Source of the DNA: Eutreptiella sp. 'Long Island Sound 2002'
Lineage: Eukaryota; Protista; Euglenida
Direction: 5' to 3'
Assembly: GCA_964036045.1 (NCBI GenBank)
Contig: OZ038378.1
Coordinates: 165,230,001 to 165,294,000 of the forward strand
DNA: 64,000 nt
The translations under genes were made by a program, and so were the position numbers. Positions 20,300-62,333 of this stretch are shown piece after piece; within the stretch, counting starts at the first letter, position 1; every line of letters starts with the position of its first letter. The notes under the pieces are model-generated. The model ran no database searches. It was not told the origin of the DNA and was given only the letters and a program-made list of their open reading frames with translations.

Positions 20300-21168
20300 C
20301 TAAGGTCCCGCAACGTCTTCTTGACCTTGAGTGGACTTCAACTGCAGCCTCCGAGTGCGAGTCTTCGGCTGCCCTTGCGCTGGCTCCTGCCCCTGCCCCT
20401 GCCCCTGCCCTTGCCCCTGCCCCTGCCCCTGCCCCTGCCCTTGCCCTTGCCCCTGCCCTTGCACCTGCCACTGCCCCTTCTCCTGCTCTTGCTCCTGCCC
20501 CTGCCCTTGTCCGTGCCCTTCCCCGTGCCCCTGCCCCTGATTTGGCTCCTCGGTGCATGTCGCTGGTGGATGCAGCCGCTCGTTGGTGTTGCTGTTGAGG
20601 CTGGGTCCCGGGGCAGTGCTGAACTTCAAGTTGGCACCGGGGTTCGGGCTGCCGGCCAAGCCTGGGTCAGCGTCAGCGTCGGGGCTGATGCTGAGGTCGG
20701 CGTCAACATTGCGGCGGGTGTTGGGGTCGGGGCCTGGCTGAGGGTCAGGGCCGGGGCCAGGGCTCAAGCTGCGTCTGATGTCCGAACTGAGGTTGATTGC
20801 TGCGTGGGAGGCCTGGCGGGGACTCGGAATGGGGCTGGAGCCAGGGCTGTGCGTAGGGCTGTGGCTGGGGTTGGCGTTGGGGATCCAGCCCCAGCCCAGT
20901 GGGGAGGGCTTGGCGTCGAGGGATGCATCAAGGTCACACGGGCTGTGAGCGCCGAGCCTGCTGTCAGGTCCGCTGCCCGCTGGCTCAGGTAACAAGGAGG
21001 AATGCTGTGCCGCGAGACGAGCGGCGCTTCGGATGCGGCCGACGGAGTCGATGGTCTCCGAGGGCAGGGTCGGGGAGCAAATGATGGTCGAGCACTGCGA
21101 CCCGCCTGAAATGCGCAACATGAAGAAGACCGAGGGCGCCATGTCACGGGCGGCAGGGCGCTCCCTAA
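20300..21168 (-). CDS. Terminal exon: low-complexity S/P-rich and (GQ)n tail
   Basis: A phase-1 join TCC G|TT AGG links ORF 21535..22683 to ORF 20300..21181; the (GCCCCT)n repeat on the + strand encodes GQGQ. Confidence 0.6.
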
Positions 21169-24100
21169 CTATTTTGCTCATGAGAATGGCACATCGAACT
21201 GGTGTAACTCCCGTTAGGCGGGCCCGAATGAGTGAGTGAGTGAGTGAGTGAGTGAGTGAGTGAGTGAGTGAGTGAGTGAGGGAGGGAGGGAGTGAGTGAG
21301 TGAGTGAGTGAGTGAGCGAGTGTGAGTGAGTGAGTGAGTGGGTGAATGAGTGAGTGAGTGAGTGAGTGAGTGAGTGAGTGAGTGAGTGAGTGAGTGAGTG
21401 AGTGAGTGAGTGAGTGAGTGAGTGAGTGAGTGAGTGAGTGAGTGAGTGAGTGTGAGTGAGTGTGAGTGAGTGAGTGAGGGAGGGAGGGAGGGAGGGAGGG
21501 AGGGAGTGGGCGAGCCAGTGGATGTGATTTCAGATCAGGTGTAAAGGATTGGCATACCGGACGAGGACGGCGTGTGCGCTTTGCTCTCTGGGGGCGAGGC
21601 CAGCATGTCCTGTGCGCTCGGTTCGATCAGATCTGCACTGCTTGTGACCAACTGCGGAAGCCCAATTTTGCGCTGTGTGACAGTGGAATTGGGACCACTG
21701 GGACCACTGGAGCAGTTGTCAGGGCCGGTGTAGACCGGCGTCATGGGAACCCGCGTGTGGGGCAGGCCAGGGAGACCCGGGTAAGTGACGGCCCCCAACG
21801 TCCCACGCGCGCACGGGGCCTGCTGCGGATCCCCTGAGGCCTCCCGCATCTCGATGCAATCGTGCGTCACGTCGTGGAACGAGGCGATTTGATTCCTTTT
21901 GTACAGCGTTTCACTGACCTCGAAGCCGGTGTTCGGCCGGAACAGCACCTCCTGCTCCTCCGGGAATCGGGAGAACTGGCTGACAGCCTTCGCCCGGGTG
22001 CTGTGCACAAAGAAGAGGGTCCCCTCTTCTTTCTTCTTCTTCTCCACGAATTCCTTGGCCACGCCCTCCTGTGTAGAGGCGCTGGAGAACGCCGGCCAGC
22101 ACACCGCGTTGCCCTGGCGATACTTGTCTTCGTCGAAGTGCAGGCCGACGCCTCGATAGACCGTGCCCTGGTGGTTCGGGAGCTTGTCAAGCACACAATC
22201 CAGCTGCCAGATCAGTGGCCGCCAGAAGGCGATGTGGGGGTCTCCGAGGTCGGTTGCCTTCCGCATGGCGCTGGGTAAAAGTGGGGCATACAGCAAGCAA
22301 ACAGGGCACACACAGGGCATACATGGGGCATACATAGGGCACACAATCCCAGGAACAAATACCATACGCGTAAAATAGCACAATGGACCAGCACAATGGC
22401 TCGGGGAAAAGGGTTTGCGCGCGCGGGGGAGCGGGGGGAACAGATAACGGAATCGCTCGAGAGCCAGAATGTTCTGTAGGGTTGTGTGTGTGGAGGGTTC
22501 GTTCAAGCCCCTGTTCCAGATACCCCCCTCAGCCCGGTGGGGCTCCAAAATTGGGCGCGGGAGGGGGTCGCGGTCGGGGGGTGATCCATAAATGTGGGAG
22601 GAAAGCTGGTTGATAATTCTGGTGTAACGCATCGGTGGTGGTGGTGGTAGTGGTGGGGGGTACGCCAACATATACAACTTCACAATGATCTCCGCAACGC
22701 GCTGATCATTTTGTGGCAGAAATCACGGGGAAATACTCTCAGAAAAATTGCCGGAGGACTTGCGCATCTGATTTTGTATCCAGTGGGGGGGCGTAACGTC
22801 CGCAAAGGCCCTTTGGCGAAGACCTTCCCATACATTGGATCACGCCATCCAAGCAACACATGATGGACATGCTCCCCATGATTAACAAAGGGCGGAGACA
22901 CGCAAAACCGCCATTTGAACCACCTTTCAGGATCTGGTGCTTGGGCAGGCCGATTTCCAACCCATTCCTGATCCGCAGCCCTTTGATATAGGCTCGTTCA
23001 CAAACAAATAAGTGTGGTGTGGCGCACCGAAACATCATTACCAACGTTCTAGGTCTCCAGCCGGGGGGTTCACTAAGATTCTTGAAGGTGGCTATTATGA
23101 TGAGTGTAGGGTTAAACGATGGGGTGAGGGTTTGGCCACTACTACCATGCATGATGTCATTTGTCAACTAGACTCTGGTGGCACACCACAAAATCTAGGG
23201 GGCTGTTGCAAAACAGGCTTCAAGTGCCAAGCCATCAAGAATCGTTTTACACAAACCTTGCCAAAACTGCCAGAAAAAGTCAAAATCAAAATCAGCAGCA
23301 CCACGCATCGGGACAGCAGACACAGAATCAGAATCAGAACAGCAGACACAGTTCCGAGAGTAAAGAGCAAGAAGCCAACATCAGGAAGTTGCAAGGGCTC
23401 CTCTTAGGGCGGCTGTGGGCTTGCATGCGCACCAAGAGACCCTGAGGAGGGGCTCAGAAGGCATACACAGGGCACCCACAGGGCATAGAAAGGGCACACA
23501 CAGGGGGCGTTTGTGCATGACGCTCACAGCGCACGCACAGCACGCACAGCGCGCACAGCATGTGCACAGCGCGCATTTTATGGGGAGGGATTGGGGAATT
23601 TCAGGGCAATTAGCAATATTCTTGCCTATACAGACCATACTACACCCCCACAACCCCAGGTTTCACCCCGCCCCCACCCCCCAAGCCACCCAAGGCCCCG
23701 AATTGCAACTAGTGGCTCTCCGTTTTCTTGTTTACCTCGCCGTAGTTAACGACCAAACACAGTGCTGTGGACCCTGGTTTGGCGACAAGAAAACAGGGGC
23801 TGCAATGCCGGGGGTATTCCTTATCTTTATATTCTTCAACGAGCCTAACATCTATACATTCTTGGATCTGGTGCTCGATTTCTTCAACCTGATCCTGAGG
23901 AGCGGGATACCTTGACACCACCTCACAACAAAGTGAAAAGTACATGCACATGGCATGTGTGGGGACACCCTCCCACAGGGCACACATGGCTGGGTGGCCG
24001 CGATCATGCCTTCCCCCGTCACATGCGGGAGCGACTTTGTCAGGCACATTCCCCAGGGCAATGGGACGGGTGGTTGCTCCCTTGGTCCTTCTTCCTGCAA

Positions 24101-27100
24101 TGTCAAAGGCGGCATCCCGAGCACCAAAAGATACTTTCCTATCTACCTACCTTGGGTATGGTCCTGCACATGGTTGTGCACAGCGTACGCACAGCACGCA
24201 ATACGCCCCCACAGGGCATACGCACAGGGCATAGACAGGGCATAGACAGGGCATGAACAGGGCATTTACGCTGGGCACACCTGTTGATCTCTTTGTAGAT
24301 CTGATGCGACGACGGCTTGTCTAATTCGTATGTGTACACAAATACCGGCAGAACGTGCAGCGGCGTGATGTGGGGCATGTCTAAGATGAGCCGCTGCCGG
24401 CCCAGCTCGTACACCTTCATCACCGCTTCCACGCACATGTCCTTCACGGCTTTCTCCGCAAACTGAGGCCTCGTGGTCTCTGGCAGCGCCAAGTAAGACT
24501 GCCTGGTTGTGTCTGGCAGCGCGAGGCAAAACTGCAGCGTGCTGATGTTGCAGCGGTACTCCGCGTCGTAGAACGCAAAAGGCGTCTCCGTCGGCACCTC
24601 CAAACCGTCGGAGTAGCGCGTCGTGTCCACGGGCCGCGCGATCGGCCCACCATCACGACCCACCGCCTCCCGACAGGCCGGCCCTAAAGCAGTCTCAGTG
24701 AACTGCTCAAGTTCGCTCGCGAAATGCTGCCCGCAGCTGTTCCTTATTGAATTTCTGGATTTTGGGTTCTTGCAGGGCGGCTTCCAGAGGGTGGGATCAA
24801 CCAGAGCCTCTGTGACCAGCAGTGTGAGGTGCTCCGCGCTGCAGGTCACCGCAGCCGTGCTCCCGAACCCCAGGATCACGTACACGCTGCTGTCGGGGTC
24901 GATGGTGGAGGGATCGCACGTGACCGCCCACTGCCCTCCGCCCTTTCGGTGCTGCAGCAGCGGCCCGAGGCGGCAGCGGACGTTCAGCCGGAGGTCGCCG
25001 GCCTCGTGCTTCAGGCTGTGCAAATGGACCGCCGCGGCGAATCCCGGGGCCTTCAACCGGACGACCCTTCGCCCCGCAGACCGGGCGGTGCAAATCTCCT
25101 TCTGGAAATCCGGCGGATACGCATGCCACAGCCCCGGCGCGATCTCGTACTCCCACGTCGCTTCTTGCGCGTACCGCTCTTTGTAGGCGGCGACGAGGTA
25201 CTCCACGGTGGCGGTGTCTGAGGACGGCAGCGCAGACTCCAACACCGAAACCGCGTGGGGGATGCGACGCAGGTCCACGTCCCCTGGGGACAGGGCTTCG
25301 CTCTGCAACTGACCAGTTACATCCGCAGGGCCGTCGGCATGCCCGGACGCTGTGCCGCTCCGCGCCTTGTGCGCATGCAGCGCACTCTCCACGCGGCTGC
25401 GGCGTTGGGGCCAGCAACAACATGACGAGGGCTGATAGAGAGGCCCCGCTGCTGCGGTCTCTTGGGCGGGCCCCTGGTGCAGGCAGTGCTTGTCCAGAAG
25501 GAGACGGTAGCCCTTCGTGGATGTGGTGCTGCCCAAGTGGCTGGAGACACACCAAACACTCTGTTCCGGTGCATGCCCCTGCCCCGGCGTCTGCTCCTGC
25601 CCCTGCCCATGCCCCTGCCCCTGCACCTCCCTCTGCCCCTCACCCGGCTCCTGTGCATGAAAGTAGATGTAAAGCCCCGTGCGCAGCCCCACGTACACGG
25701 GCTTCTGGTGATACGTCAGCACCGGTTGGCGGACGTAGACATCGTTGTAGCTCTCGTCCGGCATGTTCCGGATCCACAAGCTGCCGGCAGAGATGTCGTC
25801 CTCGCACTGCAGATCGAGGCACGTGCAATTTGTTGGGAACTGCGACAGCAGGATCTTGAGCGCCGAGCGGTTGCCCACAGCGGCCGCGCAGTGCCGCGCG
25901 CTCGCAAACCCGGGCAGGTTAGGGTTAGGGTTAGGCAGCGTCGCAGACTGCAGCCGGGGGCGCCTCTGGAGGATGGCGACCATGCTGGCCATGCGGTGCT
26001 GCGCGATGGCGGCCGCCAGCACATGCGCCACTTCGCAGTCCGTGACCTCCTCCGCCTCGCACCACTTCGCACACTTCTCCTCCTCCTGCCACATGTCGGC
26101 GCACCGCTTAGCCCAACACTCACTGTGGTAGGGCCGGTGCCCCGGGCCCCCCAGCCACAGCGTCGCGCCCACCGCCCGCGGGCAGTCCACGCAGCGCATG
26201 CAGCGCACGTGTCCCTTGCGGTGCCACACCCGGTTCCCGCCTTCCGCGTTGGGGTCGAGGGGGAGGTACGCGCCGCCGAAGCGCCAGGCAGACGTGCCCT
26301 TTCCGCAAACGGGGCAGTCGTAGGGCCGGTCCTCGCGCAGCGCCCAGAGGCCGAGACCCACAACGCCGCAGAGGCCGACCAGCCCCAGGGCGGCGCCGCA
26401 CTGCATCGACGGAGGCCATGCCATTCTCGGGTGCCGCAGGGTGTTCAGCAACACAAACCTACAAGAGCGACACAGGAGGCGTGCAAGAGGCATGCCAGAC
26501 CAGACATGAGCCTTACCTCCGGCAAACCGATGGCCGCCGGATGCGAGGGCAGCTCTGCGCCAGAGGCCGCCGGATGCGGTTGTTGTTCCCATGGTGTTAC
26601 CCCACAGCTATAGTCGAAGCAATATGCGGCTTAGACCGCCCGGCCTTGTGACCCGGGCTGGCGTGTTCCTGCCATACACTTGAACGTTGAAGAAGGAGGC
26701 ATGCGACTTGGACTTGGGGCTGGATTTGTTTGTGGTGGAGGAGCGTCACCTTTTTGGGCATGCCGGCGTGTGCCTCCCCTTGCCAAGGGGGTGGCACTAG
26801 GGTGGCACTAGGGTGGAGGTGGGTGGTCGCAAATTTCCGACCCCGCTGCCCTCCCAGAAACGTCTATTTATGCTTCTGGGAGAGTGGTGTTTCCTCTGCT
26901 GGACAGGACGTTTTTGAATGGGGGAAAAAAAAAGCTGGAGTGTCCAGTTGGCAGCCAAATCTGCACATTATGGCCACTGCAGTTCCACCAGGAGGACGGT
27001 GGATGGTTGGTGGCGGTTAGCGGCAGTTGGCAGTTGGGGGTTTGCGGTTGGTGGCGGTTGGTGTCGGTTGGTGGCGGTTGGCGGTTGGTTCGTGGTGGTT

Positions 27101-30100
27101 GGTGGCAGTTGGTTGTTGGCGGTTGGCGGCGGTTGGAAGCAGTTGGCGGTTGGCGGTTGGCGGTGGTTGGCGGTTGGCGGCCGGTGAGCCCTTGGGACCA
27201 CGTTTTTTAACTAAAAAAAAAAATCTTGTCCACTAAAAAATGCCCTGCTGCTGGAGGTCGCCGGATGCGACCCAAATCTCTGCCGGAGGCTGCCGGATGC
27301 ACCTCTTGTTGCCTGCCGGGGATTGCCGGATGCAGTCAAAATTGTTGCCGGAGGTAAGACTCATGTCTGTGCCAGACACAGCATGCAGGAGGCGTGCTGC
27401 AGGCATACAGGAGCAGGCACGCAGACCACATGCAAGAGGTAACAAACAGTTGGCACGTGGGGGAGCAGAATGCATGTGGGAGGTAAGGAGGTAAGGAGGT
27501 GAAGGAAGGAGGCGGAAGTCTTCATCAAGCATGCATGGGGCATGCAACAGACAGAGAGAAGGCATAAAGCAGCCATGCTCGAGGCGTCCTGGCGGCGTAC
27601 ACGAGACATACAACAGGCATACAGGGGGCATATGGGAGCAGTTACAGGAGGCATAAAAGGTCCACAGAGGAGGAATACAGAAGGCATACAGGAGGCATAC
27701 CAGAGGCGTACAGGGGGCGTACAGGGGGCATGCAACAGGCTTGCAAGAGCCATGCAGGAGGTTGACATGGGGATAGAGGAGAGGCCAGCAGGAGGCATAT
27801 GGCAGGCATACCAGAAGCAGCCGGCCACAAGCCACCAGAGCGCAAGGCTGAACGCGACCTGCAGCTCCACACGGACCCTCCAGAGGCCGTATAGCCAAGC
27901 GCGCCTTGCTCTCCGCTCCTGCCACAGCGTGTCTGGAAGGGGCCACACGGTCCGGCACTTGGCACGCCACCCGCAAAGCCACGCTACGACAGCGCTGAGC
28001 ACGCACGTGACTCCCGCGAGGGCAATGACCACCGCGGGCGAAGGCGCATGCACCATCACGAAATCGATGGACGTCTCTGCATCGGCCGCCGGGCGCCGGG
28101 CGGGCGGGCCCGTCGGGAGCGGCTCGTACAGCACGCGGACATGGGCCGGGGAGTGGCAGTGCAGCGGGAGGAGGTGCTCCGTGCCGGCGTCCGGCGGCGT
28201 GAAGCGGAACGACGGCGGGGGCCGGCCTTCGACTCGGCACGCGGTCTCGATGACCAGCGTGACGTTCCCCCGCAGCGCATGGATCAGCACCAGCATGCTG
28301 GGCCGGACGAGGGCCGCGGGGTGCGGCACAGAGCCGAGGCTCATGGCGTGCAGGCAGCGGTCAGGGCCGGCCCGCAGGGCCTGCGGGGCCGGGACCTGCG
28401 GGACCCGGACCTGCGGGACCGGGCCATCGGCGCCGCGGGGGTGGCCGCACAGCGGCAGCTCGGCGGTGAGCGTGGGGCTTGGGGTGGGTGTGGGCAGTGG
28501 TGTGGTCGTGGCAGTGGCGGTCGGCGATGGGGTGAGGGTGATCCCTACGGAGGGCAGGGGGAATGTGGTGGGGAGGGGGTGTCTGAGCCACCCCCACGGG
28601 GAGGGCCCCAGGGGCTGACACCGGTGTTCTGTGCGTCCTGCCATCCTCATGGAATTGGAGGGGGCACACGCGGCCTCTGGGACTGTACCCCCCAACCCCT
28701 TGTCCAAGCTACGCCCAGGCCCCAACAAACTCAAGTCCCTCCTGCACGGCGGCTTAGACAAGGCGTAGCGTACAACCCACACCTCTTAAATGGAACATCT
28801 TTGCGGGTCATGATGTTTGACCCTTGTGACAATATGGCTTTGGAACGGGTGGACACAAGGCAAACCACGAACTCTCATTGACGGTCCATCCGCCATTTGG
28901 GAAGATTCCACAAAACAAGGTGGCCTCTGATGGTGACACTAAAATTGCTACCGAAATAATTTCGGTGCCAAAGACCTAAGGCCCCCCCGGAGTAGTGTGA
29001 CTTGGACACGATGTAGACACTTGCAATGTCATGCAAATCAAACAGCGTAGGCCAAGTAGGTCAAACACCGCTTTTGTTGGAGTGAGCACAGCCGTCCTTT
29101 TGTTTCGGGCATTTTTAGGTGAAGTGTTACGGAACAGTGTTGTTTTCGCTTAAGCACGGGCGCCGGCGGTTACTGGCCAACCGGCGAGTTGCGTTCTGTA
29201 AGGCGAGTTGAGTAAGCACCAACTGCCGTCATGTGGCCGCTAAATGCTGGTAATTAAATCCTGGCTGCTGTCAGGTCACCAGCAACTGGTGGGGGTGACA
29301 GGCTGACTGCCTCTGTTGACTGGCACAGCGTTGTCAGTGGACTGTTGTGTCCTGTGCGTCATTTGTTGGCGAAATTTAACGGGGCAGTGCCCCCACACCC
29401 CCATCCCCCTTTAAGGACAATCAATGGCCACATGTTGTGCCATAACGCGAGTGAGTGGTGCACCCCCTCCCCCTGGCACACACACGGTATTCCCGTGGTC
29501 GCGCACCCTTTGGAGCATTCATGGTGGAGGGAGGGCGGCAGGCAGATGGTGGAGTTCAGCGACGACATGGCTCTTGTGTGGGATATGTCCATCACTAGTG
29601 AATGAATGGGCACCTCAAATATGCCAAAAGCGAAAGAACTGGAAGAGGAAGTGTACGCACCGCGCATGCACCGCGTCAGGTATTTGAACAACTTCCCCAG
29701 GAAATGGTCTACCTTTGAAGCCCTTGTAAATACCGTCCCTTGGTGAAAGTTGCCGGGGGAAGAGGTATGGCAGGGTGTGAGGGCCCCCTTGGGCAAGCTC
29801 ACATGCAACCAGTGCAGCAACAGGCTGAAAGATGACAAATGATTGCACACCAATCCCAATTTTGCATGTGGCTACACTGCCCAGCGCAGTGGAGCGTATT
29901 CATGGGGTGGGGTGACCCCTGCTCTATATCGGGGGTATGTGTGCGCATTATGTGTATACCATGCCAGGGATGGTCAAACCCAAGTCTGTGAAAAGACAAG
30001 TAATGTTCGGAAAAGGGCCATGTAACCAGAGGGTGGTTCTTGAGCACGGCGATTCCTGGGCACGGGGGGGGGGGGGGGGCTGTACAATGCCTAAGGACCA

Positions 30101-34082: not shown

Positions 34083-34115
<33 letters not shown>

Positions 34116-49100: not shown

Positions 49101-49428
49101 ACAGAGCCATGAAAGAAATGACTCCCAAAAATGATGTACTGAAGGCACCGCGTGGGGCACAGAGGGAGGACAGATGTCCGGCGCGCGGACATCATGAGTA
49201 GTCTGCAGTGCACAGCAGTTGGCCCATTGACCATTGCCGATCACAAATCCCCTGCACCCCCTCAGCACAGGTACGGGGCGGAGGGGGGCAGGGCGGGTGA
49301 CGCGCTGAAAATTTTGCCCGGCGCGCGCCCGGCGCGGCGACGCACCCCCGGTGGTGACCATCTCTTGCTTTGTACTCTTCTTGCACTGACACGCACACGT
49401 GCAGTCGTAAGGGCTGCTTCGGTGACAT

Positions 49429-49480
<52 letters not shown>

Positions 49481-50896
49481 GTGTGTTTGGGGGGCTCCGG
49501 GTTCAGGACAACCAAGAGAACAAGACCTTTCATTCTTCTTGTCCGCTGCAGAACGCAGGGTGCCACTGCTGGTGGTGGTGGGCCACTGCTGAATATCTTG
49601 TGTTGTGTTTTGTTGCCTCTCGCTTTTGTGTGACCGCCTTTGGATCCCTCGGAAGGGACCATATATATATATATATATATTACTACACCCCTCTCCCCTT
49701 AAATTTAGCTAACAAGCAACAAGCAAGCAACAACAACACGTCTCCGTGCCGTTTTGGCCATTGCTCCGTCCCAACGCTTCGGATCTTGTCCCTATGTAGC
49801 CATCTTGGAGCCTAGGTGGTGGCCTTGCCAAATCCAAGTTTTGAGCCAAAAACTCACCGCTGGCGGCCCGGGGCGGTGGCGCCAAGTCGGGAGGTGCCCT
49901 CCCAAATCTGCGCAATTTTGGGCCAAAAACAGCCATTTTTCGCCCAAAACAGCCCTAGTAAGGGTTCAAAACAGCCAAACGAAGGCAAACGGCTGCTACA
50001 CTTCACGTGCGGCTTGACTTTCTCGTGACCAAGGGACCTTTGGTGCCCTCTAACTCCACGATATGTCCGAGAAACGGCCCAAAAAGGCGCCAAAAAGCCC
50101 CAAAAACTGCGCAATGTGCACCAGCACCCCGAAACCAAGCACGGGCTGTATCTTGGGCTGCGTGGCTCAAAAACGAATTCCGAGGGCACCTAGTCCACCC
50201 GCAACCCCCCACTTTTTATGGTTTCCAAGCCTCAGAATCGCCCAACGAGACACGTAGACCCCTGCACCAGTGGTCACTTGGTGCAGCCGGAGGGCCGGCC
50301 AGCACACATACATTGGGGGCCAACGGTGGGTCCACCAGGGTCCCCGGGGCGAAAAAAATGCTTTTTTCCAAAGTTGTTCCTAGACCACTTGGGATGCTCA
50401 AACAAGTGTTTTTAGGCCGTTTTGAGCCCGTGGTGGCGCGTTTTGGGCCATGGAAAATCCCAAAATGCCTTGAAAATGGACCGTTTTGGGACCAAAAAGG
50501 CGTCAAAAATGGGTCAAAAACGCGTCTTTCCAAAAATGATCCTGGACCATTTATGATGCTCAAACAAGTGGTTTTAGCCCATTTTGAGCCCGTGGCGACG
50601 GGTTTTGGCTCATGGAAAATCCCAAAATGCCGTGAAAATGGGCCATTTTGGGACCAAAAATGGGTCAAAAATGGGTCAAAAACGCGTTTTTCCAAAAGTG
50701 ATCCCGGACCATTTGGGATGCTCAAACAAGTGTTTTTAGCCCATTTTGAGCCGGTTTTGACCGAGATTAGCCCCTTCCACCACATGTATGCACCAAGTTG
50801 TGCCCTTCGCACATACCTTAGAGCCGTATGGTGGAGCCACCTAGAGTTGGGAGAGGGGTGTAGATTGGAGGATATATATATATATATATATATGTG

Positions 50897-50950
<54 letters not shown>

Positions 50951-53900: not shown

Positions 53901-56900
53901 GTGCTGCCGTTGGTGACAGGGCAGTGCCCTCACGGCCTTGACCCTACGGAAATGATCTGCACCACAACTCCAGAACTGTAATATGGTGCCGGCCAGTGTA
54001 TGAACCGACAACGTCAAGCAATGCAGCACCCTCTGGGGGAAACAAACGCACCGCGCGCTCGTTTTTTGTTCGTGTTTCACGCACCTTTGGCAGATTTTCA
54101 GGGTGGCAGGGACGCGGTGGCCTAAGGGGTCAGCATACAACAACGCAAATTTTCGATCCCGCTGCCCTCCCAGAAGCTCTACTTATGCTTGTGGGAGAGT
54201 GGTGTTTACAGCCCGCAGTGACTAAATGAAACAATGGTGCCTTCATAAAACAACGCGCACCAAACCGTGCGCACCGCGCGCGCACCACGCATAGCACCGC
54301 GCGCACCGCGCGTTCGTTTCCCTCTCTGCCTGTGCAATCAGCGCTACGCTCGGTGGTGGGTGATGGCCCACACGCCCAGCCCCTGAGAGGCCTCACACTG
54401 TACCTGAGACGGATCGAGGATGGGACCGGTCATTGAAACGACAAGGTTGGGCACAGGAACACCATCCGCTGGGCTACAAGAGGATGGGAGGGCCGGCCCG
54501 ACCAGGGCAACAACAAACACAAACAAACAACAAACAACAAACAAAGGATCCACATCAATACCCTGCGTGGGCACAAGCGCGGCGGTGCGTGAGGACTGAG
54601 GATGCCCCGGAGGCTGCCCCAAAGGATGCTGCTGAGGTTGCTGCCTCTAAAGATACCGCCGAGGAGGCCGCTCATGGCCCCTGGCAACCCCCCTGTTCGG
54701 GTGGGGGAATAAAAATTTTGCCGGGGGAGGGGGGTCGTTCATGCCCCTTTTCTACACCCTGGCATGGGTCCCGTGACAGGAGCCCCAATTAGGCCACGAA
54801 GGGCGCGGTGGCCCGTTTTGGCCCTCCGAAAAGCCCAAAATGCCTTGGAAATGGGCCATTTTGTGACCAAAAACAGGTCAAAAATGGGTCAAAAATGCGT
54901 TTTCCCAAAAATGATGTTGGACCATTTGGGGCGCACAAACAAGTGAAATGAGCCCCATTTGAGTCCGCTTTGCGCCATTTTGGCCCGGGGGGTCTGGGTA
55001 CAATATATACCCCTCAAAATGATCCCCATGGCACGTCGATCATTGGGTATATACCATGGGGTAAGTGTTTTTGAAAAGAGTGTATGTATGGCTTGCGCAT
55101 CTTCCTTGTATCCGGTGGGAAGATGTACGTCGGCCAACGCCTTTTGGCGAGTACCTTCCAATACATTCGATCTCAGCATCCAAACGACATGCGACAGACG
55201 TGCTCTCAATATCTAACAAAGAGTGGAAACACACGAAACCGTGACTTACTCTTTGAGGGCTTAGTGTTTGGGCTACTTCATGGCCCCATCTCCAAGCCAT
55301 CACCGTCCTCAGACTGCATTTCATCTAGGCTGACGCCCCCCGGGCGTAAAGGGGCGTGTGCTGAGGCAATGCTCGACAGAACGTCGAAGGTTTTTGTAGG
55401 GCAGGGGGTGGGGGGGAAGGAGCTGCACTTTATGGGGGTGGGGGGGGTGACGCGAAAAAGTGGGCGGACTTGATTGAGTTTGTGGAGGAAATCCTCCGTC
55501 GCTGTGGATGGCCAATGTTGTGCGACAGCAGCATATGTACATCGGGTCTCAGTCCTCTTCTGTGCCCACAGGACTCGCGGCCAGACATGTTGGAGTGCCG
55601 CTGTTGCCGTATGTCAGCTCGTGTCTCCTGACGCGGGCCTGTGGGTAAACGTATGAGCTTATCACACCACCCTTATGTTAATGGGGAGGAGGAGCGGGCG
55701 TTCAAAGGGTGGGGGGATCCCTCCCGCTCCCCCTACCGGTTTTGAGTTTTGGCGCCGAAGGTGCGGAAGAACGATTTTGGCGGGGGTCGGCCCAAGCAAA
55801 ACTTTCCCAATCCCTTAAGAGTGGGCGAGGGGGGTCAAGGGGGGGTCGAGGCGGGAGGGGGGCACACACCCACCCACCCACCCACCCACGGGTGCTGCGT
55901 TGTCAAGTGGAGCTCTGTGGGCAAGGCCCAGTGGGCAACTGCACACCTGCTGGCGCATAAAAGCCAGTTCCAGGGAGTGTGCGTATTCGGGGGGGGGCAG
56001 CGGGCGCAGCAAACGGACAGCCTGAGTACCGGTGAATGGGGGTGGGCTGCTCAAGCAACAGGTGTTTGGAGCCGGGGGACACGGTGAGCCCCACGATACG
56101 GTGCGCACTGCCTGAGCACTGGACAGTACCCTCACAGTGAGCGCTCACACACCTGCCAGAACTGCACCGTGGGCATGTCCCAAGACCACCGCCGTGACAG
56201 GCTGGGCGATGTGCACCATCAGCGGCTGCGGCGATGTGCGGTTGGGGCCATAGCCCATGAGGTAACAGTGCCCATGGTCTCCTGTGGATGTGGAGTAGGG
56301 CCTCCCAACCTCCAGTAAAGTGCCCACCCAAAGGGACACTAGCACTATTTTGCGGCACGGCTACGCCTTACAAATGGAACTGCTGGAGCAGTGCCGCAAG
56401 CACCACCTGCAGTTGCGCCAGCAAGCACCACCTCAGCCCCCCCCCTCCCTCCCCGTGCACCCCCTCCGATCGAGAAACAGCCAAACTCCCAAGCCCTGAG
56501 GGACGCCCAAAATTGAAAACTTCGAAAGTGGCGGAACTCGCAACCGAGATCTACCCCAATATACACACCTAGGGCTGTCCTTAATATTCAAACAGAAAAC
56601 TGCCAGACTCTGGTACGCCCGGACCTCCACAGAACACCGGTCGACCAGTAACTGCTGTCGGTTGCTGGCCAACCCTCATCGGTTGACCATCAACGGCCGT
56701 CGGTTGCCCGCCAACTACCATCGGTTAAGCACCAACCACCGTCGGTTACGCACAGTCCTGCCACTCAAAACCTCAGGCTGGCCTTCGTCCCTCAGGCCCA
56801 GAGACTTCGGAGAGACTCTGGCCCGAGTCAAGAGCCAAGAGACAGTCTCCCCCGATTCGGTGGCACCAATCAACCCCCCAATCCCCCTGCATGGCACCGT

Positions 56901-59900
56901 CTCCGCGGACGGCCTCCCGGACGAACTTCCGGCATGTTTTCGCACGCTCTTAGCCTCGGTCCCTTGCTTTGTCGTGCCCATCCCCCTGGTACCCCCCTTG
57001 CCCTGCCCTCCTGCCCGCTGTACGGAAGCCCAAAACGGGTTCTCGGACTTTCAACTGCAGGGAGGGGGGAGGGGGAGGTTGGAGCCCCGTGGCGGCCCGC
57101 GCCCTAAAATCCCCCACCGAGACCGCCCCGGACGTCAGTCTGTCCCCAGAAAGCAGAAAAAATGGAAAATGGTGTTTTCGGAATCAGTCCGGGGGTGGGG
57201 GCAGTTGCGGAAAAGGAGGACGCGGCTGGGCCGCAGGTTCGGCCCAAGGCAAAGGAAGAAGGGGGGGGGGGAGGGGGGGGGGGTCCCATGCATCCCTGCC
57301 CAGCCCTCCCCATCAGCGGGCTGGGATGGGAACCCTCCCCCACCCGGCCCCCCGTCCTGGCCCGAGGCAAAGCAGATCCACACCTGAGTGGCTGAACTCG
57401 AGGGACTGGGAACCATCTGCACAAAAAGCACATCAACGCAGGGGCACAGGTCTCTGCACAGCGCCTTCACGACTGCTCAACCGCATGCACACGCGAAACG
57501 AGGGCCATGGGGCATCGCTGGGTCTTAGGCAAGCCCCCCCGTCCTTCATGCCTGGTCAACAATATGCAGGTCACCACTCTGAGTGACCCTCTAAACTTCA
57601 ACCCAAGGGCCACTTCGATCGCCTTCTACTTTCCGCCCCCTATCCCCCGCCTGCAATTAGGATTCGCCTGCATGGCACACACAAAGCACACACGGTGAGT
57701 AGCAGCCCCTTCCTTCACGTACCTGTGTCTTCAGGGCTTGGGGATGCATCGGGGACGGTGCTGTTCAAATCTGCATAACAGTACGTACGTGAGTGCAATG
57801 GACCCCCTGTCCCTTGGCCTGGCCACATCACCGCAGCCCCCGTCGCTCATCAACAAAGAAGGAGGAGCAGACATGGCATCAGTACCGGTCGACACACAGA
57901 AGGCGCATACCCCAGAGTCGAGGCTCGGCAATGGCTGCATCCGACGTGTAATTGGCCCCTGTTACTGCCACGAACCGGACCCGCGTGGCCGTCCACCCAA
58001 AGACTACGTTGTGCTCCAGCCACGGCGCGTCCTCGGAGCCCTGCTGCGGCCCCTTCCTCAGCCACAGGCCGTGCCACGCCCCCCCTGGTACGGCCTGTGC
58101 CTCCAGCGCCAGGGACCCCATGCCCGGGCCGTGCATGTGATACTGGAAAGCGATCCCCCGGTACTGTCCCTGTTGCGTGTGATGGTGGATGCGTGTGTGT
58201 GATGGTTGGATGGGTGTGTGTGGTGGTTGGATGGGTGTGTGTGGTGGTTGGATGGGTGTGTGTGGTGGTTGGATGGACCAGGACTGTGGCGACGGGCCCC
58301 ACCCCTCGACGCAGCCGTGCCCCGTCTGCAACCTCCCGGGCGACATGGTCATGGGCTCCACATGTGGGCACCTACGCTGTGCAGACTGCGCCCACAAGGG
58401 GATGACTCGGCCCCTCCTCCGCGTCTGTGTTCCATGTCGACCACTGGGATGGTTCAGGTTGCCTGGTCCAAACCTGCCTGCATGTGGTGCAAGTTGCCCT
58501 GCAAGGTGCTGTGGAACTGGGCACCCTCGGACTCGACCCCGACTGTGCCCAGGCTTTGGTGGGAGGCTGGCTCCTCGCCCACCTAGCTTCCTGCCCGGGC
58601 GCTGGCCAGGCTAGCTGCCCCCCCCGCTAGCCCCCCCACAACCACAACCACCCCGTATGGTGACGTGTGAGCTGTCACGTGTGTTGTTGTTTGAGAGGAC
58701 GTCAGCACAACACGCAGCACATGCAGTTCACAAGAGAGGAAGAAAAGCTTGCCAAGAGCCGCGAACGGCCCTAGGCGCCTTTCGCAAAAAGGTCAGTTGA
58801 AACGGAGTGCATAGTGACCTGATTGCGGGGGAGAGAGGGCAACATCACTTTGTCATCACATGCAACAAAAAGGGCAGGAGGGGAACATGAAAGGGAAGGG
58901 GACAGCAAACGTGGCACAGGCCGGGAACGCCGGCAACAAACAAACCGGACTGCCAAGACCGCCGCATGATATGTCATTGCAGGGGGCTCTTCAACCATAA
59001 AAAACAGGCACCCCCCCCCCTCCCCCCCACTGTGCCTCCCTCCAGACCGGGGCAGGGGCAAAGCCCAGGCGTGACTGCCAGGACGGGTGTGTGGTGCTGA
59101 GCAGACCAAACCTGCACTGCTGTGGGACCCCCACCGTCCACCGGGTAAAGTAGCCCCTCACACCGACCCTCACACAGCAGTGGTGGCACTCAGATAAAAG
59201 CAGGGGCCCAGGTAGCGAGAGGAGGGCCCCGCCTCCGCAACACCCTGTGGTGGCCCCCCCACCCGCCTCCTGTGGAACGGGACTAGTGCACCTCCCCAAG
59301 TGCGAAGGCTCCACTTATGACAGGGGGGATTCCGGTACCTTGGGAGGTGGACGTAGGGTGGCTGCCACCCACCGCACCCCACCGCTCTCCGCCAGCCCAC
59401 CTGGACTTCGCAAAGTCCCTCTTCTTTCCTTTCTCCCCCATGACTGCAGGTCTGGTCTCCATACTGCGAACCCACTAATTGGTCCAACCCCCCCCCCCAC
59501 TCCTGCCCTATCCTTTGTCCTGTTGTCATGCAGCCCTATCATATCCTGACTGGTGCCTGTACCCGTGCCCTCCTCCCGGCTCAACTCAGGCCGCCCACTT
59601 CTGCGTCGCTTCGATGCCCCGCCCCCGGTAAAACGGGGGCCCCTCCGCCCTTGGAAATGGTAGTACCAGGACTTGCCTTTCGGACGGGAGTCCCTGACAG
59701 GGGTAGTGGCGGTTGCGGGTGGTTTCCCATTGGCACTCGTGGCACTCCTGTGGTGCCAGATGTGTGTGTGTGGTGCCAGATGTGTGTGTGTGGTGGTGCA
59801 TGGGTGTGTGTGGTGGTTGGATGGGTGTGTGTGGTGGTGGATTTGTGTGTGCGGTGGCAGATGGGTGTGTGTGGTGGTTGGATGGGTGTGTGTGGTGGTG

Positions 59901-61990
59901 GATTTGTGTGTGTGGTGGCAGATGGGTGTGTGTGGTGGTGAATGGGATAATGACGCAATAAATTCTGTCCCAACCCTTAAAAATGCGTGTGTTAATTATG
60001 CCCATTTCTTGTAAAATTCTGTTGACCGAAACACTAGAGACGCCAAAAGGCTGCGGGGCCCAGGGCACTCCCGCCCCCTCACACGCGCTCCTACGTGCTG
60101 GTGAACATGCACACTTTTCACATGCTACGAATTGTTTGGTGCATTTGGTTGTGGTCGTGTTGTTGGCCTTGACCCACAACGCTTCGAACCACGGCCACAA
60201 GAACTTGTCATTTCAGTCTGATACTTCACCATTCCCACCTACGTAAACGCCTTGGTCCACCAAAAGCCGCCAATCACTTGCAGTGGCGACCCGTTTGTCA
60301 CCGCTTGAAAACCGCCAACCCACATCGTGTGCCGGATGGTTGTACATAATCTCCAACGTTGACAGTAAATTCAAATCCAATAAATGGTGTTGTGGAAGCA
60401 TTTGGATATGGCATTTGTTGTGTAGGTTGTGGATTTGCATTCCTACATTTGTTCACTGACGGAGAACAACGGAAACACCGGATTTGCCGAAGGTACGTAG
60501 CAGTGTAAAAAGGGTGACAGAACCCCTCCCCCCCCATCCCAACCCTCACCCCCCCCCCCGCCCCCCCGGTACTGCACAAGGCATAAAGCACAAAGCACGG
60601 GCACAGGGCACAGGGCGCAAGGCACAGTACATAAAGCACCTTCGGTGAGTACAGGCACGCGACTTTACTGGGGTGGTTGGGGGTGCTGGCCTCAACGTAG
60701 GCGTAGGGGGCGCTGCTGGGCCCCTGTGCGGGCCCGGTGCCGCGAGAGGGGGTCGTCCCTGTGGCCTCGGTCCACAAAAAGTCGCCATCGGTGGTCCACC
60801 AGTGGGTGCAGAAGAAGCGTGACGCACACGCGGTGGGGCTGGCTGCAGCACAAAAGAGGGCAGTGAACGGGGGTCGCGACTGCAATGCCCTGCTCTCAGT
60901 CTCTAACCCGCCCCCGCTCCCTCCCCCTGTCCCTCCCCGTGTCCCTCCCCCTGTCCTCTCCCACTGCAGAGTGTCCGAGCAGCCAGTGCACACGCCCCCT
61001 GGCCGGACCCCTCCCCTCTCCTCAAAAAAAGAGTTTAATAGACAAGGGCCCCAAAATCCAAGGTCTGGGATGAAGCCCACGACCTCCGGAGGCCCCGAAA
61101 CTCACAAACAGCAAAGACGGTATTTTTGGAATCAGCGGCGAGGGGCCACCAGCGTGCGGCGGGGGAGGCGATTTTCGTTCGAGGTCCCACACCATGTGCC
61201 ACTCAGTACTACCCGTTGCCATACCTTGGTATGGCCCACCCATAACTTGGTAGGAAGCAGCTGCATTCAGTGCATGGGTCATAAGGACCCAGCCCCATCC
61301 GATCATGTCGGATGCAACGGACTAGTGGCGAGTCTGGTCCAAGAAATCATCATGTGCGTGAGTGTGTCTGCGCGTGTGAGTGTGCGGGTGCAACACCGGG
61401 GTAAGCACAATGAGGGGCGCGGCGGATGCCCACACTGAGCCAGTGGATACCCAGAGCCAAACCCAAAGCCTCTGCCTCACCCCACTGCCTCTGCCTCTGC
61501 CGCTGCCTCTGCCTCTCCCTCTGCCTCTCCCTCTGCCTCTCCCTTTGCCTTTGCCTCTACCTCTGCATGTCAGTCTGTCCCTCTCTCTGCCTCTGCCTCT
61601 GTCTCTGCCTCTGCCTCTGCCTCTGCCTCTGCCTCTGCCTCTGCCTCTGCCTCTGCCTCTGCCTCTGCCTCTGCCTCTGCCTCTGCCTCTGCCTCTGCCT
61701 CTGCCTCTGCCTCTGCCTCTGCCTCACCCTCTGCCTCTGCCTCTGCCCCTGTCTCTTGCCTCTCCCTCTGCCTCTCCCTCACGTGCTGCGCCGGGGAGAG
61801 GTCCAACCTTCGTTGAAAGCCACGATGGTACCCGCCCGCGATGTGACGCGGAAGCAACTGTCGCTGGGCTCAAGGCAGTCCTGCACCGGTTCGGTCAGGT
61901 TTCGGCCAACGGACCACCCTCTCTCATATTCGTAGAACAGGACCCGCTCGAAAGTGGAGGCCACGGAGAGCTCCAGCGTCACTGCGGAGT
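20300..61990 (-). CDS. Multi-exon receptor-like mono-ADP-ribosyltransferase: MAM, 7 RCC1, stalk, 3 TM, LIM-like, ankyrin-like, WWE, ART (5' end beyond this span)
   Basis: Exons 61990-61808, 60842-60640, 58169-57911, 56281-56153, 53437-53285, 52447-52283, 49003-48854, 46149-45997, (32248-32180 optional), 31615-31454, 30611-30462, 28628-27812, 26458-24281, 22270-21558 and 21168-20300. All junctions are GT-AG and all phases are compatible, giving about 2,100 aa. Confidence 0.75.
21229..21507 (+). repeat. (GAGT)n / (GAGG)n microsatellite in an intron
   Basis: Directly visible. Confidence 0.95.
21558..22270 (-). CDS. Exon encoding the ART catalytic core (R-S-E class)
   Basis: [13 protein letters not shown] and [17 protein letters not shown]; acceptor TTTACCCAG; donor GTATGC. 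Confidence 0.9.
23712..23910 (-). pseudogene. Ty3/Gypsy reverse-transcriptase N-terminal fragment in an intron
   Basis: [19 protein letters not shown]...[27 protein letters not shown]. Confidence 0.65.
24281..26458 (-). CDS. Large exon: TM3, LIM-like Zn finger, ankyrin-like repeat, WWE domain, ART N-terminal helices
   Basis: [16 protein letters not shown]; [19 protein letters not shown]; [19 protein letters not shown]; [21 protein letters not shown]...NVRCR. VFVYTYE...IYKEIN joins SAMRK across intron 24280-22271. Confidence 0.8.
26904..27247. mobile_element. hAT-type MITE family A, copy 1 (344 bp)
   Basis: Imperfect TIRs CAGGACGTTTTTGAATGG and CCACTAAAAAATGCCCTG; exact 8-bp TSD CTGCTGGA (26896-26903 and 27248-27255); internal GGCGGTT repeats. 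Confidence 0.9.
27812..28628 (-). CDS. Exon: Pro/Thr-rich stalk, globular juxtamembrane segment, TM1 and TM2
   Basis: [21 protein letters not shown]; [23 protein letters not shown]; [16 protein letters not shown] joined in phase 2 to FVLLNTL. The exact acceptor is uncertain. Confidence 0.65.
30462..30611 (-). CDS. RCC1 repeat exon 7
   Basis: [14 protein letters not shown]...[14 protein letters not shown]; phase 1-1, 150 nt. Confidence 0.85.
31454..31615 (-). CDS. RCC1 repeat exon 6
   Basis: [15 protein letters not shown]...[14 protein letters not shown]; phase 1-1, 162 nt. Confidence 0.85.
32180..32248 (-). CDS. Possible 69-nt linker exon
   Basis: CCCCCCGCAG acceptor, open frame [23 protein letters not shown], phase 1-1; weak donor. 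Confidence 0.35.
32560..32940 (+). repeat. Degenerate GAGGCGCCC tandem arrays
   Basis: Two blocks of about 12-nt units (32560-32720 and 32850-32940). Confidence 0.7.
34713..40012 (-). pseudogene. LINE ORF2: APE endonuclease, RT, RNase H, C-terminal Zn knuckle; one in-frame stop and one frameshift
   Basis: APE: FLSLNVQ, VSLQEV, GDIN, LDHFL, SDHSPI. RT: [30 protein letters not shown]. RNase H: IHDAS, SYQAELY, FSDS. Zn: CPFCG..RHYVDSC. TGA at 38918-38920 is directly followed by an in-frame ATG; a 1-nt frameshift lies near 37120. Confidence 0.85.
40050..42929 (-). CDS. Putative ORF1 region of the retroelement (three consecutive ORFs; coiled coil plus RRM-like segment)
   Basis: Coiled coil [27 protein letters not shown] in 40948..42024; alpha/beta segment in 40050..40856; position upstream of ORF2. 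Confidence 0.45.
43079..43152 (-). ncRNA. tRNA-derived 74-nt sequence with A and B boxes; not a functional tRNA
   Basis: GGGACCG-TGGTCTAGCGG...GGTTCGAATCC...GGGCTGCA; the acceptor stem does not pair. Confidence 0.55.
44283..44870 (-). CDS. Orphan 195-aa ORF at the 5' side of the retroelement
   Basis: Basic NLS-like N-terminus ([11 protein letters not shown]) and a globular core. Confidence 0.4.
   Translation of the reverse strand: MPLPCCLVPAMGKDKRKRSDEGYKNQRRRSAARYASRIAGEKAPLCPAYILHVHSRETIELRLVPPVSQQHTESAFQRFRGAVITALRPVLPDVRWIPHTVKPPSQHYHPRWWRLHRDNSKYGYVTVELTSHNGPARFRILGSANMINEIARGLFPPMDYESACRLPSRGNDDSDRRGPDADPGAGAGAGILAGV
45997..46149 (-). CDS. RCC1 repeat exon 5
   Basis: [15 protein letters not shown]...[14 protein letters not shown]; phase 1-1, 153 nt. 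Confidence 0.85.
46332..46698. mobile_element. hAT-type MITE family A, copy 2 (367 bp)
   Basis: TIRs CAGGACGTTTTTTAATGG and CCACTAAAAAATGACCTG; exact 8-bp TSD CCACAATC (46324-46331 and 46699-46706); about 12 internal copies of the 21-mer GGAGGGTAACCGAYGGCGGTT. Confidence 0.9.
47220..47567. mobile_element. MITE family B with nested inverted repeats
   Basis: Outer [33 protein letters not shown] / GGGGCTCATACGACCCCTCCCCCCCTTTGGGGCAA; inner IR GGGGCTCTTTTGTCAG / CTGACAGAAGAGCCCC; shared core AAATGAAAATG..TTTGGAATCAGC. Confidence 0.7.
48854..49003 (-). CDS. RCC1 repeat exon 4
   Basis: [13 protein letters not shown]...[13 protein letters not shown]; phase 1-1, 150 nt. Confidence 0.85.
49683..50863. 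mobile_element. About 1.2-kb non-autonomous TIR element family C, copy 1, within (TA)n
   Basis: TIR CTACACCCCTCTCCC / GGGAGAGGGGTGTAG; internal sub-repeat GGGATGCTCAAACAAGTG; similar over its length to 51035-52064. Confidence 0.75.
50946..51026. mobile_element. 81-bp mini TIR element within (TA)n
   Basis: Perfect IR GGCATAAGTGGG / CCCACTTATGCC flanked by TATA. Confidence 0.65.
51035..52064. mobile_element. TIR element family C, copy 2
   Basis: Same termini and interior as copy 1; followed by ATTGGAGGA(TA)n. Confidence 0.75.
52283..52447 (-). CDS. RCC1 repeat exon 3
   Basis: [15 protein letters not shown]...[14 protein letters not shown]; phase 1-1, 165 nt. Confidence 0.85.
52681..53029. 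mobile_element. MITE family B-related element
   Basis: IRs GGGGTCGATAGAGCC / GGCTCTATGGACCCC and AAAAGGGGCTCAATTGA / TCAATTGAGCCCTTTT; same internal core as the 47.3-kb element. Confidence 0.65.
53285..53437 (-). CDS. RCC1 repeat exon 2
   Basis: [15 protein letters not shown]...[13 protein letters not shown]; phase 1-1, 153 nt. Confidence 0.85.
56153..56281 (-). CDS. RCC1 repeat exon 1 (shortened)
   Basis: CYLMGYG...SPQPL...[14 protein letters not shown]; phase 1-1, 129 nt. Confidence 0.75.
57911..58169 (-). CDS. MAM domain, C-terminal exon
   Basis: [17 protein letters not shown]...LWLRKGPQ...W...VRFVAVTG...DAAI; phase 0-1. Confidence 0.85.
58318..58440 (+). pseudogene. Isolated C3HC4 RING-finger coding segment, antisense within an intron
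   Basis: CPVC-x11-CGH-x2-C-x2-C-x12-CVPC fits the RING-HC spacing; no full gene seen. Confidence 0.4.
59760..59940 (+). repeat. About 21-bp GT-rich minisatellite (also at 58190-58275)
   Basis: GTGGTGGTTGGATGGGTGTGT units. Confidence 0.85.
60640..60842 (-). CDS. MAM domain, N-terminal exon
   Basis: [28 protein letters not shown]...YAYVEAS...ACLYSP; phase 1-0, joins [14 protein letters not shown]. Confidence 0.85.
61480..61790 (+). repeat. (CTCTGC)n microsatellite
   Basis: Directly visible. Confidence 0.95.
61808..61990 (-). CDS. Upstream extracellular exon of the receptor-like ART gene
   Basis: TGCTGCAG acceptor, open frame [12 protein letters not shown]...TIVAFNE, GT donor; phase 1-1, 183 nt. 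Confidence 0.6.
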
Positions 61991-62288
61991 CTGCAGCACA
62001 GGACATGTGCGTGTAAAAAGGCCCAGAGGCGTTGGGAAGTGGGAGGCGAGGGAAAACTGGTACCCTAGCCCAGGACCGTGCCGGTGCGCTACATTAGGAA
62101 AGGTTATGGCACAGTGTTCAAAGTAGTGGACATCTGTCAGCCGACAGCTATTGGCGGACCGCCAACAGCATTTGGCCAGTAGCCGACAGCGGTTGGCAGT
62201 TGACCGGTTGACTGGAGCGGGTAGCTCAGTGATTAGGAACCTTGGTTTCAGGAACATTCAGGTCCGAATCCAGCAACCTGCAAATGAC

Positions 62289-62333
62289 CCTCCACTACTG
62301 AAGTGTATGCATTTATCCCTCCTGGTAGTGTGC
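62289..62333 (-). CDS. Possible 45-nt upstream exon
   Basis: CCTTGTAG acceptor, open frame HYQEGINAYTSVVE, GT donor, phase 1-1. Confidence 0.3.

Follow-up and report, generated by a model that had tools for sequence, protein, structure and literature searches.

A predicted three-pass membrane protein with an extracellular RCC1 propeller and a cytosolic ADP-ribosyltransferase domain in the euglenid Eutreptiella

The window, that is the whole stretch of DNA analysed here, covers 64,000 nucleotides of the euglenid Eutreptiella sp. 'Long Island Sound 2002' (assembly GCA_964036045.1, contig OZ038378.1, positions 165,230,001 to 165,294,000); positions given below are those of the window unless another contig is named. 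This GC-rich, eukaryotic DNA carries a split gene for a putative receptor whose cytosolic part would end in an ADP-ribosyltransferase (ART) domain, and the coding signal of this receptor-ART gene is confined to the minus strand, on which all of the gene's features described below lie. In a first Pfam pass over the long open frames, an ART domain was found at 22.7-21.5 kb, and at 40-37 kb an endonuclease together with a reverse transcriptase. Translated from stop to stop, the minus strand showed separate open blocks holding a single RCC1 repeat each, a large one of 822 codons at 26.6-24.1 kb, and motifs resembling MAM near 58 and 60.7 kb. When borders were read base by base and the limits checked by script, 14 exons were delimited, running from 61,990 to 21,538. 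Their introns all begin with GT and all end with AG (CAG in 12 cases, TAG in two), the phase chain is unbroken, and the 5,399 nt of summed exons plus one base from an upstream exon make 1,800 codons. The GC content of third codon positions (GC3) is 0.64-0.86 in the exons, against 0.52-0.65 in the frames of a retrotransposon lying in one of the introns. The majority of the exons are in phase 1 at either end, as expected if the propeller described below arose by exon duplication.

The first exon within the window, which is not the first of the gene, lies at 61808..61990 (acceptor CAG, donor GT, phase 1 at both ends). Its approximately 61 codons belong to a part of the ectodomain without domain assignment; they had no match in Pfam and matched weakly residues 228-274 of the paralogue P0096 (E 0.045). 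The MAM domain is split over two exons. Its N-terminal half (60640..60842) was found by tblastn with the MAM of P0007 (E 3e-4) and with P0096 (E 2e-11, 56% identity), and its C-terminal half (57911..58169) by tblastn with P0007 (1e-11) and by Pfam, where it covers MAM positions 76-147 with an E-value of 0.008, sub-cut-off when taken alone. The two exon pieces share 52% and 40% identity with the MAM of P0096, which itself reaches 35.6 bits (Pfam cut-off 26.4). Taken singly, the window pieces stay under this cut-off (16.5 bits), and a PDB sequence search made with the two pieces alone returned chance antibody matches only. Comparison of a family MAM profile including these pieces (A5) with solved MAM domains gave matches ranging from 1.5e-14 to 1e-5, among them MDGA1 (1.5e-14), neuropilin-1 (4.8e-10) and also enteropeptidase. 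The whole domain can be assigned to MAM (PF00629) through P0096 and profile A5. A possible linker micro-exon of 48 nt follows at 57723..57770. It has phase 1 at both ends and strong sites (TTATGCAG/ and CAG/GTACGTGA, the slash marking the splice border), but is the least certain of the exons, and the frame is the same with or without its inclusion.

The RCC1 repeats are distributed with one blade per exon. Six of them are each above the Pfam cut-off on their own exon (E 1e-8 to 1e-12), namely blade 2 at 53285..53437 (E 2.7e-11), blade 3 at 52283..52447 (1.1e-11), blade 4 at 48854..49003 (7.8e-10), blade 5 at 45997..46149 (1.2e-12), blade 6 at 31454..31615 (1.3e-9) and blade 7 at 30462..30611 (1.9e-8). 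A profile built from these six clear repeats recovered a degenerate seventh one at 56.2 kb (E 8e-8, profile positions 16-52) and had no other match in the window. This exon (56153..56281), delimited by its splice sites, would be blade 1, whose counterpart in P0096 is degenerate likewise. The number of repeats is therefore seven, that of an RCC1-like seven-bladed propeller.

The next exon (27812..28544) encodes a Pro/Thr-rich linker, an 8-strand beta-sandwich, a first transmembrane (TM) helix, an Arg-rich loop and most of a second helix. The juxtamembrane sandwich (28,383-28,042) was modelled by AlphaFold with a predicted local distance difference test (pLDDT) score of 80 and is jelly-roll-like by Foldseek, without a more specific assignment. 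The region of this exon, including the juxtamembrane domain, is conserved in 14 relatives up to a G..W motif at the exon end. Three hydrophobic helices separate the ectodomain from a zinc finger: TM1 at 28,032-27,967, TM2 at 27,858-27,812 continued at 26,458-26,443, and TM3 at 26,394-26,338. Since the split TM2 ends at the conserved G..W of the family, the choice of the donor after the TM exon is settled. An alternative donor, CAG/GTC near 27,860 (phase 0), was ruled out, as the start of the large exon offers a phase-2 acceptor only and the relatives run on through TM2 to the G..W motif.

The cluster of three helices was present in 12/12 long relatives examined, the truncated P0024 from Euglena longa showing two. 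Relatives with complete N-termini (P0002, P0004, P0011 and P0026) begin with a signal peptide. Lys/Arg are concentrated between TM1 and TM2, with 5-10 residues in 10/11 relatives and 9 in the window protein, against 0-2 between TM2 and TM3, a positive-inside pattern. With a cleaved signal peptide and three TM helices after it, MAM and RCC1 would be placed outside and the LIM-like, ankyrin, WWE and ART parts in the cytosol, and the domain types are in keeping with this topology (MAM, EGF, TSP1, SRCR and PAN outside; zinc finger, ankyrin and WWE inside). An extracellular position of MAM and RCC1 and a cytosolic position of the ART are thus strongly inferred.

The large exon (24281..26458) holds the end of TM2, TM3, a LIM-like finger, ankyrin repeats, a beta domain, a WWE domain and the N-terminal part of the ART. 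It was modelled by AlphaFold from a 40-row family alignment (pLDDT 80, predicted template-modelling score 0.80). In this model, the ankyrin stack, which starts from 26,124 (structure match, Z 7-8), is interrupted by the beta domain (25,797-25,501) and by the WWE domain (25,164-24,919). The latter is recognized both by structure and by profile. Model residues 432-513 match the WWE domains of HUWE1, TRIP12 and DTX1 at Z of about 11 (top 11.4, HUWE1), with a root-mean-square deviation of 1.7-1.9 Å, and the family WWE profile finds DTX1 (1e-7) and TRIP12 (5e-7). The window sequence alone scores 16.1 bits, under the Pfam cut-off of 21.1, which relatives exceed. The zinc finger (26,316-26,113) has a ligand spacing conserved in the family, C-x2-C-x31-H-x2-C-x2-C-x2-C-x18-H-x2-C. 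A LIM domain was defined as C-x2-C-x16-23-H-x2-C-x2-C-x2-C-x16-21-C-x2-C/H/D with two zinc sites and the LIM fold. Pfam gave no LIM match on the window, the family profile of the finger, compared with PDB, found no LIM but marginal matches to C2H2 fingers and ribosomal eS26, and in Foldseek LMO2 and CRP were matched weakly (E 0.3-0.5, probability 0.6-0.87).

The last exon (21538..22270) encodes the catalytic part of the ART and a C-terminal tail. Alone, it scores 47.0 bits against PF01129 (cut-off 22.3), relatives scoring 45-58 bits. Upstream of it, the end of the large exon (24,540-24,283) supplies the N-terminal part of the fold. The junction between both exons is collinear with P0007, without indel, so that the fold is complete; in P0007, the Pfam ART match spans profile positions 65-203, across the equivalent of this junction. 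The catalytic motifs are YRG (22,158-22,150), FSSAS (22,089-22,075) and EEQEV (21,960-21,946). They align with YRG, FTSTS and EAEV of the arginine-specific Vis toxin, which is the best solved match (2.9e-9 in PDB). Among 24 family members, the arginine is found in 24/24, S-x-S in 24/24, the first glutamate in 23/24 and the second in 24/24. Such near-invariance of the catalytic residues argues for an active enzyme under selection. The window protein is predicted to be catalytically active and, as E-x-E is typical of arginine-specific ARTs, also arginine-specific.

The gene ends with a TGA stop at 21,537-21,535, close to the point reached by the alignment of the paralogue P0002 (about 21,568). 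Coding exons between 21,535 and 20,300 were ruled out by the stop codon, by the end of the paralogue alignment and by the low-complexity repeat beyond, and no relative needs them. At the other end, neither a start codon nor a signal peptide was found in the last part of the window (62-64 kb). The upstream contig L004, in which position x corresponds to window position 73,476 minus x, has at 205-257 an ATG that starts a typical signal peptide. This exon ends with CAG/GTATGT in phase 1, about 9.3 kb beyond the window end. A PAN-like exon lies around L004 4,938-5,201, about 4.4 kb past the window end. It is in phase 1 at both ends and matches residues 1-87 of P0096 (1e-16); Pfam gave no match on it. 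The gene thus probably extends over about 52 kb, from the equivalent of window position 73,271 to 21,535. The initial annotation had proposed at least 14 exons of compatible phases, about 2,100 residues and limits at 20300 and 62333. The exons and their phases were borne out, with AG/GT borders throughout, while the size becomes 1,800 codons in the window and about 2,000 residues overall. The limits have to be abandoned, given the stop at 21,537-21,535 and a 5' end probably about 9 kb beyond the window. Between the signal-peptide exon and the PAN-like exon, a 425-residue gene called at L004 2,085-3,563 (about 7 kb or so beyond the window end) consists of Pro/Thr/Ser repeats with a GC3 of 0.25; although it resembles the Pro/Thr stalks of the family, a microsatellite is the likelier explanation.

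The large exon was the query of an exhaustive HMMER search, which identified 123 relatives, of which 41 are below 1e-30; a word-indexed homologue search with the same exon had returned the window's own open reading frame (ORF) only. Many relatives are long proteins with the cytosolic block near the C-terminus, and the RCC1-like domain model scores 144-281 bits in them. For example, P0007, a single ORF of 2,032 residues, has a signal-like N-terminus, MAM, seven RCC1 repeats, three TM helices and the cytosolic block with WWE and ART. In the same way, P0002 (a single ORF of 1,683 residues; its 37x contig and the 35x one of the window belong to one assembly) has a signal peptide, RCC1, three TM helices and ART, and the full-length transcripts 79 and 47 of Euglena gracilis encode EGF/TSP1, RCC1, WWE and ART. 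P0096 contains, in order, a PAN-like module, a stretch without assignment, a piece like the first exon of the window, MAM, seven RCC1 repeats, three TM helices and the LIM-like finger, and this order makes it the closest model for the window gene. In a tblastn comparison with the window, the matches of P0007 are collinear: first both MAM exons, then those of RCC1 and of the TM helices, and lastly the large exon (1e-85) and the ART exon (2e-35). Two junctions were checked by residue: the ART is split without indel relative to P0007, and the split of TM2 ends at the conserved G..W of the family.

The same domain order in single-ORF paralogues and in E. gracilis transcripts supports a one-gene reading, and homology strongly indicates that the MAM/RCC1 exons and the WWE/ART exons belong to one predicted gene. 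An extracellular sensor and a cytosolic catalytic domain would therefore lie on one polypeptide, by prediction and homology for the window copy and by transcripts for the E. gracilis relatives only. Most of what the initial annotation had read from the letters is thereby retained. The single polypeptide is found again in P0007, P0002 and the E. gracilis transcripts, which require no splicing model. The MAM and seven RCC1 repeats are recovered, six by Pfam, the seventh by the repeat profile and the MAM by the family profile (1.5e-14). The three TM segments said to set them opposite the ART are present, in agreement with the signal peptides of the relatives and their Lys/Arg-rich first loop, and the R-S-ExE ART with YRG, FSSAS and EQE is indeed intact (47 bits against PF01129, motifs in register with Vis). 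Concerning the LIM/WWE pair, the WWE holds (Z 11.4, profile 1e-7), while the LIM has to be toned down to a LIM-like finger, with conserved spacing but no LIM sequence match. Signalling or defence through ligand-triggered ADP-ribosylation, which the initial annotation had itself marked as inference, stays putative.

The origin of 30 relatives was traced. Twenty-three are ENA assembly contigs (the three that were checked all come from ERZ25074135, the assembly of the window) and seven come from EukProt (four from E. gracilis, two from E. longa and one from Peranema trichophorum); the named sources are all euglenids. The ectodomain modules of the paralogues include SRCR, FG-GAP, MAM, PAN, EGF, TSP1 and GON. 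At the opposite extreme, the short-ectodomain relatives P0005, P0016 and P0024 retain the TM cluster and the cytosolic block (P0024 being truncated, with two helices seen). From sequence comparison, this is a large euglenid family in which the block from jelly-roll to ART is constant and the extracellular modules are variable. The family, of which the initial annotation was unaware, is already in public transcriptomes, without annotation. The initial annotation knew of no described transmembrane receptor with a cytosolic R-S-E ART and none turned up here: neither the full-text literature searched nor one preprint describes the architecture, and the Aravind review on the evolution of ARTs, which may mention it, lay outside this search. 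Intron-rich and intron-free members are mixed in the family, P0002 (L003 3001-8052) and P0007 (L001 3001-9099, a 14x contig) being uninterrupted and the window copy having at least 15 introns. The intron-free members could be retrocopies, or the 14x contig could derive from another organism or haplotype.

Sequencing runs of several origins were compared with the window. The organism's own runs X2-X4 contain the introns too (0.89-0.96 of the sampled words) and are therefore genomic DNA, not RNA; runs X5-X7 contained no window sequence. An estuary metatranscriptome yielded exact contigs on the last exon (21,834-22,162) and on the large exon (25,676-25,865), and unique intron sequence is without cover in it. 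These exact matches suggest a brackish or marine habitat. Reads aligned to 21,500-27,499 revealed no splice joint, the joints reported lying in repeats at 26.5-27.3 kb with less than 95% identity.

Besides its exons, the locus carries various repeats. A retrotransposon of about 8 kb resembling long interspersed nuclear elements (LINEs) occupies 34,716-42,995 on the minus strand, in the orientation of the gene, within the 14.4-kb intron that separates RCC1 blades 5 and 6. Its frames match an endonuclease/exonuclease/phosphatase domain (E 0.002) and a reverse transcriptase (E 8e-7); two further ORFs upstream and an 846-codon ORF downstream have no Pfam match. Pyrimidine-rich imperfect repeats, TGCC(C/T)TGT(A/G)TGCC, are found on the minus strand at 27,800-27,380, 24,275-24,200, 22,340-22,275 and 60,635-60,570, where they adjoin several donors on the 3' side and the acceptor of the ART exon on the 5' side. 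They translate as a Cys/Met/Pro-rich hydrophobic peptide in frames that stay open, which could mislead exon and TM calls; they may serve in intron-end pairing or be remnants of an introner. A short element is present in two copies on the minus strand, in introns or upstream (63,155-63,512 and 52,552-53,013), which share ...DDFSEP.R.ADSK..(V/I)FIF... along with a tail rich in Gly. The element probably represents a repeat of the miniature inverted-repeat transposable element type. In the intron between the large and ART exons, an open minus-strand block (23,712-24,146) without Pfam match ends with a motif, ...FLVAKPGS..., that resembles the start of a retroelement polymerase. Long minus-strand microsatellites lie just past the stop (21,530-21,200, translated as THSL repeats) and in the intron after the first exon of the window (61,780-61,330, translated as AE, RQ or GR repeats).

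Altogether, the predicted protein would expose a signal-peptide-directed ectodomain made of a PAN-like module, MAM, a seven-bladed RCC1 propeller, a Pro/Thr-rich stalk and the jelly-roll, cross the membrane with three helices and carry in the cytosol the LIM-like finger, an ankyrin stack with an inserted WWE and an R-S-ExE ART of the ARTC/toxin type. A ligand bound at the variable ectodomain would alter the packing or the oligomeric state of the three-helix segment, and the unit formed by jelly-roll, three helices and zinc finger would couple the signal across the membrane. The cytosolic ART would thereby be switched and mono-ADP-ribosylate arginines on targets or on itself, using cytosolic NAD+. 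The adjacent WWE would bind an ADP-ribose-type ligand and ensure feedback or recruitment. A receptor-enzyme with ligand-gated ADP-ribosylation appears as the most economical reading, its gating being putative. Taken jointly with this mechanism, the interpretation of the locus as one minus-strand gene of at least 16 exons, 14 of them within the window, encoding a protein of about 2,000 residues, is favoured with a confidence moderately above even.

Several points weigh against this interpretation. Enzyme activity, target, ligand and gating are predictions only, and the arginine specificity deduced from E-x-E rests only on analogy with characterised ARTs. An extracellular RCC1 propeller is unusual, as these propellers are usually intracellular. 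Neither the runs nor the estuary metatranscriptome, which could itself contain DNA, provided a read or contig joining two exons of the window copy, and the retrotransposon lying in the same orientation within an intron could disturb expression. Lastly, the 5' exons were placed by phase and by similarity to one paralogue only, and the approximately 140 residues expected between the PAN-like exon and the first exon of the window were not located.

Other explanations share the architecture but differ in what it would do. The protein could be a defence switch, sensing a pathogen, a predator or damage and answering by massive NAD+ consumption or toxic ADP-ribosylation of its own cell, in the manner of TIR/SARM1-type or bacterial abortive-infection NAD+ enzymes. 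The large size of the family, its highly variable ectodomains built from modules of animal immune and adhesion receptors (SRCR, MAM, PAN, TSP1, EGF) and the bacterial toxin Vis as nearest solved ART are all compatible with such a role. However, a scaffold of WWE, ankyrin and LIM-like finger resembles a regulated signalling platform, and defence, which the present data do not separate from ordinary signalling, is considered rather unlikely. The same holds for an always-active membrane-anchored enzyme whose ectodomain would ensure adhesion or localisation (e.g., at the pellicle or the flagellar pocket) without gating the ART. Although P0005, P0016 and P0024 keep the TM cluster and the cytosolic block behind a short ectodomain, the tight conservation of the jelly-roll/three-TM/LIM-like junction despite very different ectodomains suggests coupling across the membrane and speaks against permanent activity.

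Two further explanations concern the gene or the topology themselves. The window copy might not be one working gene, being either a paralogue that decays after silencing by the retrotransposon or two separate mRNAs. A LINE-like element on the same strand (43.0-34.7 kb) and the failure to find splice-spanning RNA would fit this view; furthermore, euglenids add spliced leaders at acceptor sites, so that independent 3' transcripts are conceivable. Yet none of the 14 exons is interrupted by a stop, their splice sites and phases are intact, as are the catalytic residues, exon GC3 is high, TM2 is split over the junction of the TM exon and the large exon exactly where it is continuous in single-ORF relatives, and two exons have exact contigs in an RNA library, which leaves this explanation only a slim chance. 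An ART located outside, as in animal ARTC enzymes, is in turn extremely unlikely. To our knowledge, all characterised eukaryotic PF01129 enzymes are extracellular, but here a signal peptide plus three TM helices put the C-terminus opposite the ectodomain, the first loop carries 5-10 Lys/Arg, and zinc finger, ankyrin and WWE are cytosolic domain types.

If the receptor-enzyme reading holds, euglenids could have a class of receptor ADP-ribosyltransferases with interchangeable animal-like modules, which would act in signalling or cell killing through cytosolic arginine ADP-ribosylation and possess a built-in WWE reader. This generalization is tentative and its chances are put below even. Were it true, it would add a fourth kind of receptor-enzyme to kinases, phosphatases and cyclases. 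A receptor-bound cytosolic ART with intact residues and a WWE would thus bring ADP-ribosylation among the few direct outputs of receptors. The ARTC-type enzymes of eukaryotes are known to act outside the cell, and few writers of intracellular arginine ADP-ribosylation are defined; the family would provide a genetically defined one in a eukaryote. E. gracilis, a culturable species with two full-length family members (transcripts 79 and 47), would offer a tractable system for testing this. Furthermore, a protist lineage distant from animals would use an extracellular RCC1 propeller, along with modules of the MAM, SRCR, TSP1, EGF and PAN types, for surface recognition.

The predicted protein shares features with various known systems. 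With the ARTC ecto-enzymes (ART1-5, PF01129) and the R-S-E toxins Vis, iota and C2, it has in common the catalytic family and the R, S-x-S and E-x-E residues. However, the known eukaryotic ARTCs are glycosylphosphatidylinositol-anchored or secreted and the toxins are soluble and delivered into other cells, whereas the window ART is the predicted cytosolic tail of a three-pass protein, behind LIM-like, ankyrin and WWE domains. As in PARP7/11/12/13/14, RNF146, HUWE1, TRIP12 and Deltex, a WWE is found beside an ADP-ribosylation machinery. In those proteins it accompanies the PARP-type (H-Y-E) clade or E3 ligases, whereas here it is paired with an R-S-E ART, a pairing absent among the described architectures that were found. 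The seven-bladed propeller is shared with RCC1, HERC, RPGR and alsin, where it is nuclear or cytosolic; unlike theirs, the propeller of the window protein lies between the signal peptide and extracellular modules on one side and the first TM helix on the other, and is hence predicted outside. Finally, the combination of a variable extracellular sensor with a conserved catalytic domain on the cytosolic side of a membrane span follows the logic of receptor kinases, receptor guanylyl cyclases and the receptor-type adenylyl cyclases of trypanosomatids. The window protein would differ from these by three helices instead of one and by an output consisting of protein ADP-ribosylation. The Euglenozoa do possess a lineage-specific family of receptor cyclases.

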